Shown: positions 726 through 8,619 of the stretch, piece by piece | How the letters are laid out: every line of letters starts with the position of its first letter | Position numbering within the stretch: the first letter of the stretch is position 1 | NCBI RefSeq assembly: GCF_006345805.1 | Contig: NW_021828381.1 | Location: 1 to 8,619, forward strand | Direction of reading: 5' to 3' | Length of the DNA stretch: 8,619 nucleotides | DNA from: Octopus sinensis | Taxonomy: Eukaryota | The notes under the pieces: generated by a model | The model's database searches: none | Told to the model about the DNA's origin: nothing | Seen by the model: the letters and a program-made list of their open reading frames with translations, nothing else | Position numbers and translations under genes: made by a program

Positions 726-1609
726 ATTGGCGAAGGCGGCCATAAACTTGCCTTAGTTACTCCGCAAAAGTCAGCACTAGTCCTAAAGGGGATTCCGCGA
801 TGGATCTCCAATCGGGACCTAGAGCTGCACCTGAAGGAAACCCTCAGTTCGGTGTTCGTTCTCGAGCGATTCACGCGAGATGGTCTCAACATCCCAGTTG
901 CTAAGCTGACGCTTGACTCACGAGCTGAAGCTACTTCTTTGATCCGCACCGGAATCACAGCTGGTTTCTGCCTTATCACCTGTGAATGGTTCAGACCTCC
1001 TGTCGTCCGATGTTTCCATTGTCAGAGATTCGGACACCTGTCCCGTAACTGTCAAGAAAAAGCCCGGTGCTTATACTGCGGCAAGGACCACGACCGAAGG
1101 GAATGCCCAGGCAGCAAACAAAGTCTAGTGGAGCCCTGCGGTCGGCATTGTATCAATTGTGACCGCCCCGGCCACCTCGCTTCGTATGGTGGATGCCCGA
1201 CGGCCAAAGCTGCAACAGCAGCTAAATGGGCCGCCGCGCAGAAGCAATGCCTCGGTCTCCTAACCCAACCCGCATGGTAATGGTAAAAGCTAAGCCGGTC
1301 ACGCCTATCTGGAAAGTACGGCCGCTAATAACCCCGTGTGTGGCGGACGCCCATACCCAGACGACGCAAGTCGTTGAGGTTGGTGCGCAGAGCATGCAGG
1401 CCCCTGTCGCCGAGGCTGTGAAACCGAGGCCCGTCAGCCCAATAAGGAACGGTACTCAGCAGGCCAAAACGCAGGCGAAGGTAGACTCTCACAACAAGGA
1501 TGCTCTGTTGGAATTTTACCAACGCTGTGTCGACGCACTGCTGAAACTGGGAGTCAAACCCAAGAAGCTAGAAGAGCTCCTATCAGAGAGGAGCTCGCCA
1601 GCAAAATGA
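726..1609 (+). pseudogene. E1 ORF1, gag-like nucleic-acid-binding protein; 5'-truncated, with one -1 frameshift near 1224-1226
   Basis: The frame of the 852 ORF is open back to 726 (includes LVLKGIPRWISNRDLELHL). Knuckles: CFHCQRFGHLSRNC, CLYCGKDHDRREC, CINCDRPGHLASYGGC. The 1226-1609 ORF is its continuation: IWKVRPLITPCVADAHTQT aligns with E2 VWRKPTISRCFDSSTQT. Confidence 0.88.
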
Positions 1610-4215
1610 CCACGTCACTAAAAATCATCGCTGTGAATGCCCGATCTGTCAAGAGACGGCACCTCGACTTCGTTGAGATGGTAAACAGCGGCCATCCTGA
1701 CTTAATCGTCGTCAACGAGTCTAAGCTGAAAGAAGGTCAATGCTTCGAATTGCCAGGATACTGCTCCCTTGACCTGAAATGGAGAAATAACTCTACGCCT
1801 GGGACTGGGACGACTATCTACTACCTGCAAAATCTCAAGACACGTAACCTCAAGACTATCGAACGGAACCTATGCGAATTTATCTCGCTAGAGATTAAAA
1901 CCCAGCGCTTTTGGTTAAAAGTGGGCGGAATATATTGCAAAAACCTTGCTCCATGCATCGGTCTTATCGAAGACTTCTTTGTCAGCTCAAATCATTGCCT
2001 CCTCATCGGTGATCTAAACTCCAAACACACGGCATTTGGTTGTCGCGTGACCAATCGGGACGGCCGGTTACTTGAAAGAGCGGCAGGTAGGCTAGACGTC
2101 TGTGTCCGCACCTCGAAAGCCCGGAACCACCGCTCCCCATTCGGCTGGGACAACCTTTGCGTAGCACTGAGCTCTCAATCAGTCGCGAATCTTATGGGAG
2201 AACCAATAGTACTCGACGATATTGGGAGCGACCACCTGCCAATGCAGGTCTGTGTCCACGTCTCGGTAGACACCCAAATCCGTTGCCCACCACGATACAC
2301 CCTTTCGAACATCAACTGGGCGCACTAACGTTATGCTCTGAACTTGTTCTTTCGCAACAACGTACGCCCAGGCAGCTATCAATCTACCTCGGACATCGAC
2401 AACTCGGGCGCCGAATTGACGGACTTCATGCGACTCTACTTGGAAGCCCACGCTAGGAGGGTGCGCCCAACTAGCAAGGGCATTACACATCAAAAACCCC
2501 AAACTTCTCCAACTTCTGGGCGAAAAGAAACGCCTGCGAAACAAGCTCAAACGCTGTGCCGACCCAACGGACCAAGGTACCCTAAGGTCGGAAATCTCTC
2601 TGCTCAACCACAAATTGAACTCACAAGAAAGAAAGATCTTGAGAGGATGTGGAAGAAGGCCTGCTCTGGTCTTAATCACAGGAACCCAAACTTCTGGATA
2701 GCCTACAACAGACTCTCTAATCATCTCGTGAACTCTCCGGCACCAGAATTATCGAACTCAGCTGGAATGCCTGCGTCGGTGGAGGAAATCCCCAACATAT
2801 TTGCTGATCACCTGGACCGTCCTCTGCCGGACCATGAGGATCGCTGGGGAAACTCACATGCCAGTCCTATAGACCAAGCAGACTCCCTATCTGTTGATCA
2901 TCACCCAATCACCGCCGCTGAGGTGACCTGGGCCATCCTCTCGGCGAGGGACAACGCACCGGGGCATGACATGCTACCAATGAAAATGTTCAAAGAAGGC
3001 CCTCCGGAACTGTCTGAGTTTTTGGCACGCCTCTTCTCGGCTAGTCTTCGCTGGAGCCACGTTCCAAGTGCCTGGAAAGTCGCCGAAATCCGGATGATCA
3101 AGAAACCTGCAAAACCAGCTAACCTTGCCAGCAGCTATCGACCCATCAGTCTAATACCAACGATCTCGAGGCTTATGGAAAAAAATTATGACCAAACGCT
3201 TCGACTCCTTCGCTGAGCAGAAATGCGTGCTTCTGCCCCAGCAGTGGGGCTTCCGCTCGGGGCGCAGCTGCGCCGATTGTTTTCTGATTCTCCAATCGAT
3301 GGCTTTGAAAGCAATGGAGTTCAACGAAACTTTATCTTGCATCTGCCTTGACATCTCTAAAGCATTCGACAGCGTGTACCACCCAGACCTATTGGACAGG
3401 GTTCGCAGTTGTGAGCCAACGAGAGAGGCATTTCTCTGGCTGAATTGCTTTCTTTCTAACCGTATCTCCTTTGTGTCCCAGTCGGGCTTTCACTCCAGAG
3501 ATATACATCTCCGAAGGGGTGTCCCGCAGGGATCCAGTCTCAGCCCGCTGCTGTTCAACCTTGTGATGAGCAGCTTCCCTTCCTTCCCCAATCCGCGGAC
3601 AACTTTCCTCTTGTACGCTGATGACGTCCTCATTATGGATATTTCAAAAAGCCCCGCACTCTCGGAGCACCGTCTTTCCAGCTACATCGGAATGATAGAG
3701 ACCTGGTGTCGGGGTAAACAACTATCCATTGCTATGGACAAGTCGGCGTACCTTGAAATTAACTCACGGCGCAAATCGAGGCAAGAGCCTGAGATTCTCA
3801 GAAGACTTCCCCGCCCGAGCCACATTCGCTATCTGGGCTTGACGGTAGACTCTAACTCGGAGTACTTACTGCACATCACCCAAAAAAGGAAAAAGGCCGT
3901 TGCGGCCCTTCGCTTCCTGAGGGGTATGCATTTGGCCCCGACACTTTTCTGTTTGTCTTTCGCGCGACGATCCTCCCAAGTCTCTTGTATGGGATGGAGG
4001 CGTGGCACTATTCAAACCAATTCGGAAAAATATTGAAAAAATGTGAGAAGATCCGTCGCTATGCGTTAAAGCTAGCGTACAGATTGGATCTACGCGCCCC
4101 GCTACCCAACTGGGCAGAGGAGAAATCTCCACTAATCGAGAAAGTCATCCTTGATTCCATCCGAACTTTTCGTCGGCGGTCTCAGGTGACCGATCTTTTC
4201 GTGGATCGCGTCTGA
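1606..4215 (+). pseudogene. E1 ORF2, AP-endonuclease plus reverse transcriptase, disrupted
   Basis: APE motifs VNARS, VNESK, GDLNSKH, WD, GSDH. RT motifs YRPISL, QWGFR, LDISKAFD, GVPQGS, YADD (3614-3625), YLG. Lesions versus E2: in-frame TAA at 2326-2328, +1 at ~2500, -1 at ~2613, +1 in A7 at 3179-3185, -1 at ~3940. Confidence 0.95.
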
Positions 4216-4371
4216 AATTCAATCAGAGAGTGACTCTTCAAAACCCGCTCATATATTCCCTTAGGACGAATCTCGCAGAGCTCGACTGTCTTCGCAGTCG
4301 TCTCGTTTAACCTCGTCCACCTTTTTACTTAGTCTCTGTTTTACTTACAATAAAACTTTCCATTCATTCCT
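4216..4371 (+). other. E1 3'UTR with stem-loop, AATAAA and short TTCC(A/T)-type tail
   Basis: Follows the ORF2 stop. CGACTG/CAGTCG hairpin (4283-4300) inside GGACGA/TCGTCC (4264-4269/4313-4318). AATAAA at 4349-4354. The terminal motif is shared with E2. Confidence 0.75.
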
Positions 4372-4373
4372 GA

Positions 4374-5069
4374 GGTTTTACTTTCCAACGGTTCTACAAA
4401 AATGGACGGAGTATACCTGTTGGAAAGTTGAGTCTGAATTCGAGGGCAGAAGCCACTTCGCTTGTAAGGATGGGAATCGAAGTGGGATTTCAAAAAATAC
4501 GATGCGAATGGTTTAAAAACCCAGCAACAAGATGCTTTCGCTGCCAACAATTTGGTCACATTGCTAACTTCTGCAAAGAAGTGGAAAGATGTCTTTTCTG
4601 TGGTGGTGATCATAATATGAAAATGTGCCCGATTAAAGGAAAAACTGAGAAAAAATGTATAAACTGCGGTCTGAGTGGGCATTTGGCTTGCTACGGTGGC
4701 TGCTCTTCAGCTAAGGCAGCCACTGAACAACTAAAAAAGCAGCTCAGTGCCAGGGACAGACTGGCCAAAGCAGAACACTCAAAAACTGTATGGTCAAAAG
4801 CGGAGGCCGTTGAATCTGTATGGCGAAAACCCACAATTTCCCGCTGTTTTGACTCCTCAACGCAAACAGATGTTAGTGAAGACGCAACTTTGCCTCCCAA
4901 TACACAACACACAGAGCCTCCAACCCGCTTTAAGAGGAAAGCACCAACTATCGACGTTGAGCTTACCTCTATGATTCGCAAAATAATCGCTATATGCGAT
5001 GAAAAAGGCCTCGATATCAACAATCTGTTGTCCCTTTCTCTTGGAAGGGAAAGGATTGATCAGGCGTGA
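4374..5069 (+). CDS. E2 ORF1 (gag-like, three CCHC knuckles), lacking its N-terminus
   Basis: The frame is open upstream of the tracked 4428 start back to 4374. GFTFQRFYKNGRSIPVGKLSLNSR aligns with E1 VFVLERFTRDGLNIPVAKLTLDSR. Knuckles: CFRCQQFGHIANFC, CLFCGGDHNMKMC, CINCGLSGHLACYGGC. Confidence 0.9.
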   Translation, partial: GFTFQRFYKNGRSIPVGKLSLNSRAEATSLVRMGIEVGFQKIRCEWFKNPATRCFRCQQFGHIANFCKEVERCLFCGGDHNMKMCPIKGKTEKKCINCGLSGHLACYGGCSSAKAATEQLKKQLSARDRLAKAEHSKTVWSKAEAVESVWRKPTISRCFDSSTQTDVSEDATLPPNTQHTEPPTRFKRKAPTIDVELTSMIRKIIAICDEKGLDINNLLSLSLGRERIDQA

Positions 5070-7660
5070 GCCCCTTTCTGTCTATTATCGCTGTGAACGC
5101 ACGTTCTCTAAAGAGAAGGCGTTCAGAGATTGAGGATATGTTATCCCATAACCCCGTGGACCTTTTGATCGTAAACGAAACAAAAATCAAAAAACATGAT
5201 GATTACTACTTGGATGGCTATCGTTCCCTTGATATTAAGTGGAAGCCGGGCTCGATCGCTGGAACAGGCACTTCTATCTACTACAAATCAACTCTAAGGG
5301 TGAAAAATCTAAAAATTGTGTCCGAGGAATTGTGTGAATTCCTCACAATCGACGTCCTTCTGGAAAAAGGGTGGGTAACAATCGGAGGGATGTACTCAAA
5401 ATCCCTTTCCAATTATTCATCGCTTATCAAGGACTTTTTTGCCGATAAACACAATCATTTGTCAATACTCCTCGGGGATCTAAATGCCAAATGCATCATT
5501 CTTAAGAAGCTTTCAGAATCTCTCAGTTTCTCGGTCATCACATCAAAAACCCCAAATCATTACTCACCAGGAGGGTGGGACTATTTGGGCGTAGCATTGG
5601 TCTCTATGTCTACTCTTCAATTTATGGAACAACCGTACACCTTAAATGATATTGGAAGTGACCATCTACCAATTTTATACAAACTCAACCTTGGACCTTT
5701 AAAGGGTAAACCAACTTTTATACGATATAACCTCTCGACTATAAACTGGGAACACTACCGAAAATGTTTTACACTTTATCTGAGCAATTTCGCTCCTAAA
5801 CTTGACGAAAATTCTTCATCTGAGGACCTCGAGAAGTCTAGCAATTCCCTTATTGGATACATAAAGTCTTATCTGGAAACATATTCTACAAAAATCGTCT
5901 CAAACAATAGGAAAACTCACATGCCAAACATGAATGTTGAAATCCTACTAAGGAAAAAACAATGTCTAAGGAACAAACTCCGGCGCTGCGCAGATTTTCG
6001 TGACCGGTCCGTTTTGGAAAGTGAAATCTTCACCATTACGGAAGAAATAAGAAAATCGGCGAAGGTGGCGAAGGATAAAAAATGGAATACTGAGTGCAAA
6101 AAGCTACATAAAGGAAGTCCAAATTTTTGGAAGGTCTACTCGAAATTAACCTCGACGTCTGAGAAAACTATACCTAAACTGCTAAAACAAGATGGATCCC
6201 CTGCATCTCATGAAGAAATCCCGAACATATTTGCTGATAGTCTCAAAAGAATACAAGAAGTCAATCCGGATACAAATCTATCTGATTCAGCTTTGTTTGA
6301 TATGGAAAAAGAGTTGGAAGACAATCTTAGCTCATTACCAATGTGCTCGGAATCTATAACGTGCAAAGACGTGGAAAATGCAGTTAGATACTCCAAAAAT
6401 AACGCTCCGGGAAAGGACAAGATAACCATGCGCATGTTCAAAGAAGCTCCCAAGCAACTTTACGAATATTTGGGATGTCTCTTCTCCCGCAGTGTGAGCT
6501 TGGGATACGTCCCTTCTTCATGGAAACTGACGGAGGTAAGGATGATACGGAAGCCTGGAAAACCTGGTTACTTGGCGACAAGTTATAGGCCTATAAGCCT
6601 AATTCCTACCATCAGTCGAATAATGGAAAGGGTAATGTTTGAACGACTCTCTGAACACGTCGAGAGAAATGGTTATCTCAAAGACGTGCAGTGGGGCTTT
6701 CGGAGGGGTCGTTCCTGTGCTGACTGTCTTTATACACTCAATTCGTCGATTGTAAAGGCTCTGGATTTCAAAGAGTGTCTGACAATTGTGTCTCTAGACA
6801 TCTCAAAAGCCTTTGATATGGTTTGGCACCTCGGTCTCCTTAGACATCTGGCGAAGTGTCACATAGACAAAGGACTATTCCTATGGCTAAAAGACTTCCT
6901 CCGCGACAGGCGCTCTGTGATAAGCTTTCTGAACTATGACTCGGATGAACTGAAACTTAAAAGAGGCGTCCCTCAAGGATCAGTCCTCAGTCCTCTATTA
7001 TTCAACATTGTGATGAGCAATCTGCCGTCTCCTGTCAACACACGGACGGAAATTTTGATATACGCCGATGATGTTGTAATCCTTGACATTTCATCGAAAC
7101 CTGCCTTATCCGAACAAAGGATTATATCATATATGAATACAGTGGAGCAATGGTGCGATGAAAATATGTTCATTATTGCGCGTGAGAAGTCCGCATTACT
7201 GAGAATCACAGAAAGCAGAAATTTAATAAATTTACCGTGCCTGATCAAGAACATACCTCGACAAAACTCAATTAAATATCTTGGCTTGTTCATCGATGAA
7301 AAGGGAAACTATCTCGAAAACGCAAAATTAAGTAAAAGGAAAGCAACTAATGCTCTGTTCTGCCTGAGGAAGTTAAATTTGGAGCCTGATACTTTCCTCT
7401 ACGTTTTCAATACGGTGATCCTACCGGGACTACTATACGGAAAAGAGGGATGGTACTTCTCTAAAAAGAAGGACACCATCTTAACTAAATTTGAAAAGTC
7501 TCGCAGGCTCGCTTTGAAGCTTGCTTACCACCAAAAAGTTGAAGATCCAATCCCCCTGTGGCTTGAAAGTAAATCCTCCATGGTCGGTGAAACTGTCGAA
7601 AAAGCTATAAGTGGTTATAAATCCAACTCAATTGTCACTGGGACGTACCTGCAGAGGTAG
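5066..7660 (+). CDS. E2 ORF2, APE endonuclease-reverse transcriptase (864 aa), GTG start
   Basis: Uninterrupted ORF. APE motifs VNARS, VNETK, GDLN, WD, GSDH. RT motifs YRPISL, QWGFR, LDISKAFD, GVPQGSVLSPLLF, YADD (7061-7072), YLG. No RNase H or C-terminal CCHC; ends at the same relative position as E1 ORF2. Confidence 0.96.
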   Translation: MSPFLSIIAVNARSLKRRRSEIEDMLSHNPVDLLIVNETKIKKHDDYYLDGYRSLDIKWKPGSIAGTGTSIYYKSTLRVKNLKIVSEELCEFLTIDVLLEKGWVTIGGMYSKSLSNYSSLIKDFFADKHNHLSILLGDLNAKCIILKKLSESLSFSVITSKTPNHYSPGGWDYLGVALVSMSTLQFMEQPYTLNDIGSDHLPILYKLNLGPLKGKPTFIRYNLSTINWEHYRKCFTLYLSNFAPKLDENSSSEDLEKSSNSLIGYIKSYLETYSTKIVSNNRKTHMPNMNVEILLRKKQCLRNKLRRCADFRDRSVLESEIFTITEEIRKSAKVAKDKKWNTECKKLHKGSPNFWKVYSKLTSTSEKTIPKLLKQDGSPASHEEIPNIFADSLKRIQEVNPDTNLSDSALFDMEKELEDNLSSLPMCSESITCKDVENAVRYSKNNAPGKDKITMRMFKEAPKQLYEYLGCLFSRSVSLGYVPSSWKLTEVRMIRKPGKPGYLATSYRPISLIPTISRIMERVMFERLSEHVERNGYLKDVQWGFRRGRSCADCLYTLNSSIVKALDFKECLTIVSLDISKAFDMVWHLGLLRHLAKCHIDKGLFLWLKDFLRDRRSVISFLNYDSDELKLKRGVPQGSVLSPLLFNIVMSNLPSPVNTRTEILIYADDVVILDISSKPALSEQRIISYMNTVEQWCDENMFIIAREKSALLRITESRNLINLPCLIKNIPRQNSIKYLGLFIDEKGNYLENAKLSKRKATNALFCLRKLNLEPDTFLYVFNTVILPGLLYGKEGWYFSKKKDTILTKFEKSRRLALKLAYHQKVEDPIPLWLESKSSMVGETVEKAISGYKSNSIVTGTYLQR

Positions 7661-7687
7661 AAAAGAAAAAAAAAAAAAAAAAAAAAA
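7661..7687 (+). repeat. Poly(A) tract (AAAAG + A22) immediately after the ORF2 stop, internal to the inferred 3'UTR
   Basis: Read directly from the sequence. The family 3'-terminal motif lies ~100-160 nt further downstream. Confidence 0.85.
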
Positions 7688-7783
7688 TTTACTTGAGGGG
7701 GTCTCTCTTTTTTTTTTCTGGAAGAAGTCGATAGGGTAGTCCTATTGTTTCATTATACAAACTCCCCCCTAACCTTTAACCCT

Positions 7784-7820
7784 TCTCTGTTTCCAATAAA
7801 ACTTCCTATTCCTATTCCTA
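7784..7820 (+). other. E2 3'-terminal motif: TCTCTGTTT, CAATAAAACTT and (TTCCTA)3 tail
   Basis: TCTCTGTTT at 7784-7792, AATAAA at 7795-7800, three perfect TTCCTA units at 7803-7820. Counterpart in E1 at 4333-4371. Confidence 0.8.
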
Positions 7821-7829
7821 GTATTTGTT

Positions 7830-8433
7830 TTAGTGGGTGAACAATCCTACACTTTGCCGATTATGCTTCGCAATGATAGGAAGAGCCAACATCGAAGGAT
7901 CAAAAAGCACCGTCGCTATGTACGCTTGGGTGCCACAAGCCAATTATCCCTGTGGTAACTTTTCTGTCACCTTTAACTTAAGCTTATAAAAGTAAAAGGA
8001 TCGATAGGCCACGCTTTCGCGCCTTGCATACGTACTGAACAATGCAAATAAGGTGAGCTTTTACCCTTTCGCGCTATGGTAGATTCTGTTCCACCTGAGC
8101 TCACCTTTGGACATCTGCTTTATTGTTTAGCAGATGTACCGCCCCAGCCAAACTCCCCAAATGACACTGTTTTCAGATCCGATCGACCCCGAACGGGCCT
8201 TACACTGCAAACTTTCCCATTAAGGAAGCACGGTATTACTGAATTAGTAGGAAGACGACTGAGGAAGTGGTCTTACATTGTCGCTGCGGAACAGCTCCCA
8301 CCTATACTATATCCCCAATGTCCTCCTACAATGCCAATCTAGAGTCCAAGCTCAACAGGGTCTTCTTTCCCCGCTGATTGTCACGGGCCCGTTACCCCGT
8401 CTGTGGTTTCGCTAGAGTGCTGATAGGGACAGT

Positions 8434-8464
<31 letters not shown>

Positions 8465-8475
8465 TCAATTAAATT

Positions 8476-8507
<32 letters not shown>
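7830..8507 (-). rRNA. 28S rRNA: Internal fragment of a eukaryotic LSU (28S/26S-type) rRNA gene, from the helix 69 loop to just beyond the A-loop; interrupted at both ends
   Basis: The minus strand reads TATGACTCTCTTAAGGTAGCCAAATGCCTCG...GAGATTCCCACTGTCCC...CAGCGGGGAAAGAAGACCCTGTTGAGCTT...GGGAGTTTGGCTGGGGCGG...CACAGGGATAA...TTTTTGATCCTTCGATG...GGATTGTTCACCCACTAA, all conserved eukaryotic LSU blocks. Confidence 0.97.
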
Positions 8508-8512
8508 TCATA

Positions 8513-8619
8513 TTAATTTGGAGCCTGATACTTTCCTCTACGTTTTCAATACGGTGATCCTACCGGGACTACTATACGGAAAAGAGGGATGGTACTTCTC
8601 TAAAAAGAAGGACACCATC
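8513..8619 (+). mobile_element. Third, heavily 5'-truncated copy of E2 (starts in the C-terminal part of ORF2, runs off the window)
   Basis: 8515-8619 is identical to 7376-7480 (105/105). The match extends to 8513 if one A is lost from TTAAATTT. Confidence 0.93.

Follow-up and report, generated by a model that had tools for sequence, protein, structure and literature searches.

The tail of a truncated octopus LINE lying beside a short, diverged piece of 28S rRNA sequence is probably what is found near position 7820 of the window, the whole 8,619-nt stretch of Octopus sinensis DNA analysed here. On this reading, and with the same confidence as the reading as a whole, positions 7795-7820 are the ordinary 3' terminus of a LINE copy, E2, whose (TTCCTA)3 is its version of a family tail, and the likeness of TTCCTA to the ribosomal TTCCCTA is a coincidence in a family with TTCC/ATTC-like tails. 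An earlier note on this DNA had proposed that the tail mimics the displaced half of a 28S target and rebuilds a target-like site at each 3' junction.

The window opens with an AT-rich, non-rDNA flank (1-726, 28% GC, with a GC step at ~700-730) that has no Rfam match at E<=1 and no similarity to the rest of the window. At 144-185 this left flank carries a 21-nt unit repeated twice (81% match), suggestive of no function. The flank is followed on the plus strand by E1 (727-4370), a 5'-truncated and slightly damaged LINE copy with an ORF1 and an ORF2 encoding APE and RT domains. The E1 terminus (4349-4371), which can be aligned to that of E2, consists of AATAAA, AC and a TTCCA-type repeat, TTTCCATTCATTCCT. 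Three ambiguous bases, TGA, lie between E1 and E2, and homology to E2 runs from 4374. The direct head-to-tail contact that had been described is therefore real, with E2 beginning at the end of the E1 tail and at most 3 nt between the two. E2 (4374-7820, plus strand) is likewise 5'-truncated; it has an ORF1 without a start and an intact ORF2 of 864 aa (5066-7660), and it terminates in AATAAA (7795-7800), AC and (TTCCTA)3. Beyond it lie an AT-rich 9-nt spacer, GTATTTGTT (7821-7829), which occurs once in the window and is not rRNA, and then 678 nt of 28S rRNA sequence on the minus strand (7830-8507), antisense to the LINEs. This fragment is followed by a junction filler, TCATATT (8508-8514), whose TCATA repeats the preceding 5 nt, and by E2' (8515-8619, plus strand), a second E2 copy whose first base corresponds to 7376 and which runs past the window end. 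The order of tail, spacer and minus-strand 28S sequence is thus as the earlier note gave it, and Tandem Repeats Finder returned the tail at 7803-7820 with a period of 6, 3.0 copies and a 100% match.

Relatives of these elements were examined in four contig regions (L125-L128) of O. sinensis assembly GCA_006345805.1, which together with the window make five sampled loci. Over 2279 nt E1 and O. sinensis VCDQ01007076.1 share 99.3% identity, and in the latter the ORF1 coding sequence extends farther upstream; window 727-3003 matches L126 9121-11398 at 99.3%. At the point that corresponds to window 727 the L126 copy continues as GC-rich ORF1, in a 457-aa frame with the start MAPK..., and therefore E1 is truncated at 727; the left flank of the window has no counterpart in L126, where the E1 copy runs on upstream. 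The coding sequence of E1 is interrupted by an in-frame stop (2329) and by frameshifts close to 3183 and 3950. Such damage (2329, ~2460-2640, ~3183 and ~3950) is present despite the 99.3% match to another copy, P0102, with the N-terminal half of ORF2 intact. In E2 there is no start codon, and the first in-frame codon aligns with E1 position 852, while a relative of E2 in L125, 73-82% identical, has at least 430 nt more at its 5' end. CpG depletion was tried as an age marker and proved uninformative, the observed/expected ratio being ~0.85-1.1 everywhere sampled in the genome.

Pfam matches in E2 ORF2 (RVT_1 at 3.9e-39, Exo_endo_phos at 2e-6) and CCHC knuckles in both ORF1s identify the domains, and E1 and E2 are 38-54% identical in protein sequence. 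The E2 APE domain keeps the catalytic GDLN and SDH motifs. A 12-residue segment that is present in E1 and in two O. sinensis relatives, ..H/C-T-S-F-G-C-x-x-T-N-R-D-G.., is missing from it (window 5480-5500, ORF2 residues ~143-144). When solved structures were searched by sequence, no link of the E2 endonuclease to those of R1Bm or TRAS1 emerged.

An exhaustive representative search returned one protein 74% identical to the N-terminal half of E2 ORF2, one nearly identical to E1 ORF2 from a contig of the O. sinensis assembly, and a third relative at 40% identity. NCBI lists the 74% and 40% relatives, and a further, more distant protein, under Octopus sinensis, and the best relatives in the databases from outside octopus are only 24-31% identical. 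A word-indexed search with the whole E2 ORF2 missed the octopus relatives and gave a best match of 27% identity; exact look-ups of E2 ORF2 from either start codon had no match, and protein-pattern scans for E2 copies in metagenome and viral contigs found none. Distant Jockey-like contigs from Logan contained no rRNA and gave no information on the tail. Family copies are present on four O. sinensis contigs, L126 holding a 164-nt E1-like 3' end, and they are dispersed with variable 5' truncation (E1 at 727, E2 inside ORF1). E1 and E2 are members of a diverse, dispersed APE+RT LINE family with a CCHC ORF1, distantly Jockey/I-like, and the evidence points to a family that is uncharacterised but conventional.

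The tail pattern is a trait of this family. E1 in the window ends in AATAAAAC TTTCCATTCATTCCT, the E1-like end in L126 in AATAAAAC TTTCCATTCCATTCC, and the ending of an E1-like copy other than that of the window is AATAAAACTTTCCATTCCATTCC; E2 ends in AATAAAAC (TTCCTA)3. The L125 element ends in AAATAAAG TTACCTACCTACC (unit TACC), a second lineage in L126 in AATAAA TTTTTCCTCCC, and that in L127 in AATAAAA ATTCATTCATTCATT (unit ATTC). Two further ends come from L128, AATAAAA ATTTTCCTTCCTT on the plus strand and AATAAAAA ATTCTGTTCTGTT on the minus strand, with the units TTCC and TTCTG. All seven lineages compared have, 0-3 nt behind AATAAA, a 4-6-nt unit of their own in two or three copies. The E1 end had earlier been described as a similar ATTCCT; the actual sequence is ...CATTCATTCC(T), ending at 4370/4371 with the unit TTCCA. 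The 3' flanks of six of the seven lineage tails are not rRNA, consisting of AT-rich or other sequence, and no rRNA was found anywhere in L125, L126 or L127. Annealing of the tail to the primer strand was considered and rejected, ...CACTAA-3' not being complementary to (UUCCUA)n.

Tails of this kind have a known counterpart in short-repeat-tailed LINEs, among them CR1/L2-type elements, eel UnaL2 with (TGTAA)n and the I factor with (TAA)n. The octopus elements share with these an ORF2 with APE and RT domains, truncation at the 5' end in many copies, and a 3' end in which a lineage-variable unit of 4-8 nt is repeated a few times. Three features of LINEs with short tandem-repeat tails are found here: an APE+RT ORF2, a repeat unit that varies among the seven lineages, and dispersed truncated copies. 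Unlike CR1/L2, UnaL2 and the I factor, the octopus family has the repeat 0-3 nt behind AATAAA in every lineage, and its ORF1 carries three CCHC knuckles, as in Jockey/I/R1-type elements. Another feature of such LINEs is a conserved stem-loop in the 3' UTR to which the reverse transcriptase binds; the E2 3' UTR folds no better than shuffled sequences (z +1.05), and the E1 3' UTR gave z -2.49. Directly behind the E2 ORF2 stop, at 7661-7718, a 27-nt A-run is predicted to pair with a downstream T-run around a GAGGG/CTC core. A comparable A-run and T-run were seen by eye in the distant L127 lineage (~12505-12590), and the pair could be a candidate conserved 3'-UTR hairpin.

The rRNA sequence beside E2 was identified by two alignments. 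The minus strand from 7830 matches the eukaryotic LSU rRNA model RF02543 with 590-595 bits. A blastn comparison of the fragment with E. coli found nothing, and rrlH was instead aligned directly; in this alignment the fragment spans ~1912/1915-2565, its end falls exactly on A2565, and U2552 and G2553 lie in the A-loop as they should. Across the junction the Rfam consensus reads ...CaCuAA and then UAGGGAACGUGAGCUGGG, and the rRNA match stops at ...CACUAA. The canonical plus-strand LSU sequence that the earlier note gave for the site, CACGTTCCCTA|TTAGTGGG, is correct by this consensus. The rrlH alignment likewise bears out a break after E. coli A2565, 2 nt from L2563, which is a documented group I intron site (PMC3112068).

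The fragment is diverged. Against the Rfam consensus, 36 of 430 highly conserved (upper-case) positions are mismatched (8.4%), transversions outnumber transitions, and two bases of the peptidyl-transferase centre, E. coli 2452 and 2507, are U in place of C. It is most likely an orphan fragment, neither a functional rDNA unit nor a specific target. E1, by comparison, is less than 1% diverged from another copy, and E2 has an intact ORF2 of 2.6 kb and shares 105 nt with E2' without a single difference, so that the LINEs look much younger than the 28S fragment. At least one helix of the fragment is retained by a double change (GCAGC/GUUGC to GCACC/GGUGC). A piece of 18S rRNA in L128, described below, keeps the pairing of helix 45 through a change of CCG..CGG to CTG..CAG. 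Double changes thus preserve some base pairs in both pieces, and it might be that the rRNA of the host diverges unusually far and that the two pieces are young. In searches for the uninserted 28S of the host, an ORF inside the rDNA was spurious and had no relatives, a signature-pattern scan returned bacterial 23S genes only, and a junction-proximal pattern had no match in the genome contigs.

In the proposal of the earlier note, E1 and E2 would be 28S-specific elements that nick after A2565, with a tail that mimics the displaced TTCCCTA, so that the site is rebuilt and reused and head-to-tail arrays result. We consider this highly improbable, although several of its observations are sound. The break position is real, as is the one-base difference between TTCCTA and TTCCCTA, and E2 does sit exactly at the end of the E1 tail. 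Taken alone, the tail match has a chance of 0.001-0.03: a random hexamer unit falls within one edit of TTCCCTA with a chance of 0.001 in the anchored register and 0.007 in any rotation, and of 0.027 for either half-site on either strand. These figures are too low, because the family tails are generally TTCC/ATTC-rich. A half-site could in principle matter, given that in the APE LINE R1Bm ~5 bp on each side of the nick are important for cleavage (PMC1919474). There is also a precedent for re-insertion in R1 arrays, which form by insertion into a rebuilt target (PMC2718515).

The window itself, however, does not present the rebuilt site. The 9-nt spacer between the tail and TTAGTGGG breaks it, so the E2 copy does not recreate TTCC(C)TA|TTAGTGGG, and the displaced half, TTCCCTA/TAGGGAA, occurs nowhere in the window. 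The 5' flank of E1 is AT-rich and not rDNA, and E1 is itself 5'-truncated. E1 has the unit TTCCA, and its relatives have other units and mostly non-rRNA flanks; the 28S fragment is short and diverged; and E2' meets rDNA at ~1912 and not at 2565. R1 and R2 lie in the same orientation as the rRNA, which allows co-transcription, and in the R1 clade the part of ORF2 beyond the RT holds a Cys-His motif. In the window the ORFs of E1 and E2 are on the plus strand and the rRNA is on the minus strand; residues 742-864 of the translated E2 ORF2 contain one Cys only and no Cys-His motif; and rRNA touches E2 on its 3' side only, where an rDNA-specific LINE has its target on both sides. Elements of the R1 clade are also characterised by a 3' junction that is precise and does not vary, located at the nick in the bottom strand (PMC2718515), and the single E2/28S junction seen, in one copy only, carries the 9-nt spacer.

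Neither a tail that rebuilds a target-like site nor a specific rDNA target whose displaced half is mimicked is supported by these data. Non-rDNA flanks behind other E2 copies with the same tail had been named as an observation that would tell against the mimic; such flanks are indeed seen, but behind the tails of relatives and not behind copies of E2. Judging from the sequences compared, the tail probably does not serve to copy a ribosomal target, and the idea is weakened by flank evidence that comes from relatives rather than from E2. If it were true, TTAGTGGGTGAAC would be expected after most E2 tails, and CACGTTCCCTA/GTTCCCTA before full-length copies.

The arrays of R1 in Drosophila offer a close comparison for the E1/E2 pair. 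Their copies are inserted in sense orientation into genuine 28S genes, and the target is rebuilt by 14 or 33 bp of duplicated 28S sequence between one copy and the next (PMC2718515; PMC5932611). Both cases show head-to-tail copies that are often 5'-truncated, and in R1 one preferred site explains them. Unlike the R1 arrays, E1 and E2 have no rDNA between the copies, are antisense to the rRNA and have relatives with non-rRNA flanks.

On the reading we favour, target-primed reverse transcription would have placed E1 and E2, as 5'-truncated copies, in direct succession within AT-rich DNA, and by analogy with other short-repeat-tailed LINEs reverse transcription may have started on the tail repeats. 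As to the order of events, the 28S fragment would have been present already, as the older sequence, when E1 and E2 inserted. The spacer GTATTTGTT (22% GC) would most simply be AT-rich DNA left between the LINE pair and the fragment, though with a single copy to judge by, the untemplated bases suggested in the earlier note are another possible source. Some observations sit less easily with this account: the searches returned no second copy of E2 proper, so that its exact tail is seen with a single flank; of the five loci sampled, two (the window and, with 18S, L128) have rRNA touching elements of the family, a hint that the LINE family and rRNA may truly be linked; and a landing beside the fragment does not account for E2' at the other end of that fragment.

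E2' is 100% identical over 105 nt to E2 7376-7480, at a period of 1139 nt, and in the stretch 8503-8619 the 28S right end joins E2' via TCATA|TCATA|TT. The right end itself (E. coli ~1912) lies ~16 nt upstream of the region of the classical R2/I-PpoI site. One option is that E2' is a second insertion at ~1911/1912 of an rDNA remnant.

Alternatively, the 28S piece could be rRNA cDNA captured during the integration of E2', with top-strand priming behind the E2 tail (twin priming) and joining of the product to the truncated E2' cDNA. A2565 would then be the start of rRNA reverse transcription, and GTATTTGTT target DNA or a target-site duplication. We regard this as unlikely, though it agrees with much of the anatomy. 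Read on the plus strand, 7830-8507 is complementary to the rRNA from 2565 back to 1912, just as a cDNA would be if its extension began on the left, and the piece is inverted relative to the 5'-truncated LINE with short fillers at both joints. An inverted cellular-RNA segment is thus found at the 5' joint of the truncated E2', with 5-7 nt of filler. L1 chimeras with 28S rRNA pieces of 50-482 nt have been reported, their inverted segments being attributed to twin priming (bioRxiv 10.1101/2025.02.02.635956), and the sense 18S piece in L128 is as a template jump would give. The window resembles the LINE-1/28S chimeras in having an rRNA piece of a few hundred nt, inverted, at the 5' end of a truncated LINE, but differs from them in LINE family and host, in its longer and diverged fragment and in that flanking duplications are not seen. 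The fragment, at 678 nt, exceeds the reported L1 cases, and the duplication expected after E2' would lie outside the window. Its 8.4% mismatch at conserved positions, set beside the E2/E2' identity and the intact ORF2, is an age mismatch that argues against capture, unless octopus rRNA is itself this divergent.

It is also conceivable, if quite unlikely, that the order E2, 28S piece, E2' arose because 7376-8514 (1139 bp) was duplicated in tandem, forms a small array of such units or was collapsed in the assembly; an insertion would then be recorded by the left junction alone. The 105-nt repeat is exact, its spacing is 1139 nt and it continues up to the last base of the window; TTAA-type microhomology and the TCATA/TCATA duplication mark the joint; and only one LINE landing near an old fragment would be required. 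The window, however, makes only one joint visible.

Head-to-tail contacts recur at another locus. In L126, which holds no rRNA, two tails of the E family are each joined without a spacer to sequence that starts AAA(A)ACTTGCAA. The first contact is with the 5' end of a histone-fold (H2B-like) ORF and the second with that of a full-length E1 copy; the opening codons of this E1 copy are like those of the H2B-like ORF. The shared AAACTTGCAA 5'-end motif resembles a histone H2B 5' UTR. The H2B-like ORF (5186-5570; Pfam PF00125, 2e-12) lies directly behind the E1-like tail. At 8617-8700 the full-length E1 copy resembles the H2B-like ORF both in its 5' UTR (AAAAACTTGCAA...) and in its N-terminus (MAPK..GQKR). 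This 18-nt motif also stands at 3355-3372, before a satellite of ~1.65 kb (GGCTCAGAAG-type). The two motif copies in L126, with the satellite preceded by one, look like a target-site duplication.

In L128, positions 7887-8417 contain the 3' third of 18S rRNA in sense orientation, up to the 18S end (..GAACCTGCAGAAGGATCA), ~180 nt upstream of an E-family ORF1. In the stretch 6069-14536 the unit of 18S and LINE lies between the two copies of a 1.8-kb direct duplication, 98.9% identical.

A more general tendency may lie behind these contacts, and we put it forward tentatively, as possible rather than likely: for the octopus LINE family the ends of resident copies may be preferred insertion sites, at tail/flank junctions or at the AAACTTGCAA motif, giving mixed head-to-tail arrays without an rDNA target, and its RT may also repeatedly pick up rRNA at 5' joints, antisense through twin priming in the window or sense through a template jump in L128. 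The head-to-tail contacts within the family, together with the repeated-site arrays of R1, make such junction reuse plausible independently of rDNA. In this form, if true, the reuse idea of the earlier note would be right and its ribosomal mimicry wrong, whereas a rebuilt ribosomal target, if true, would be a new array-making route for a site-specific retrotransposon. The head-to-tail habit of the family and its contact with rRNA at two of five loci bear on LINE arrays and on LINE/rRNA chimeras outside mammals and insects.
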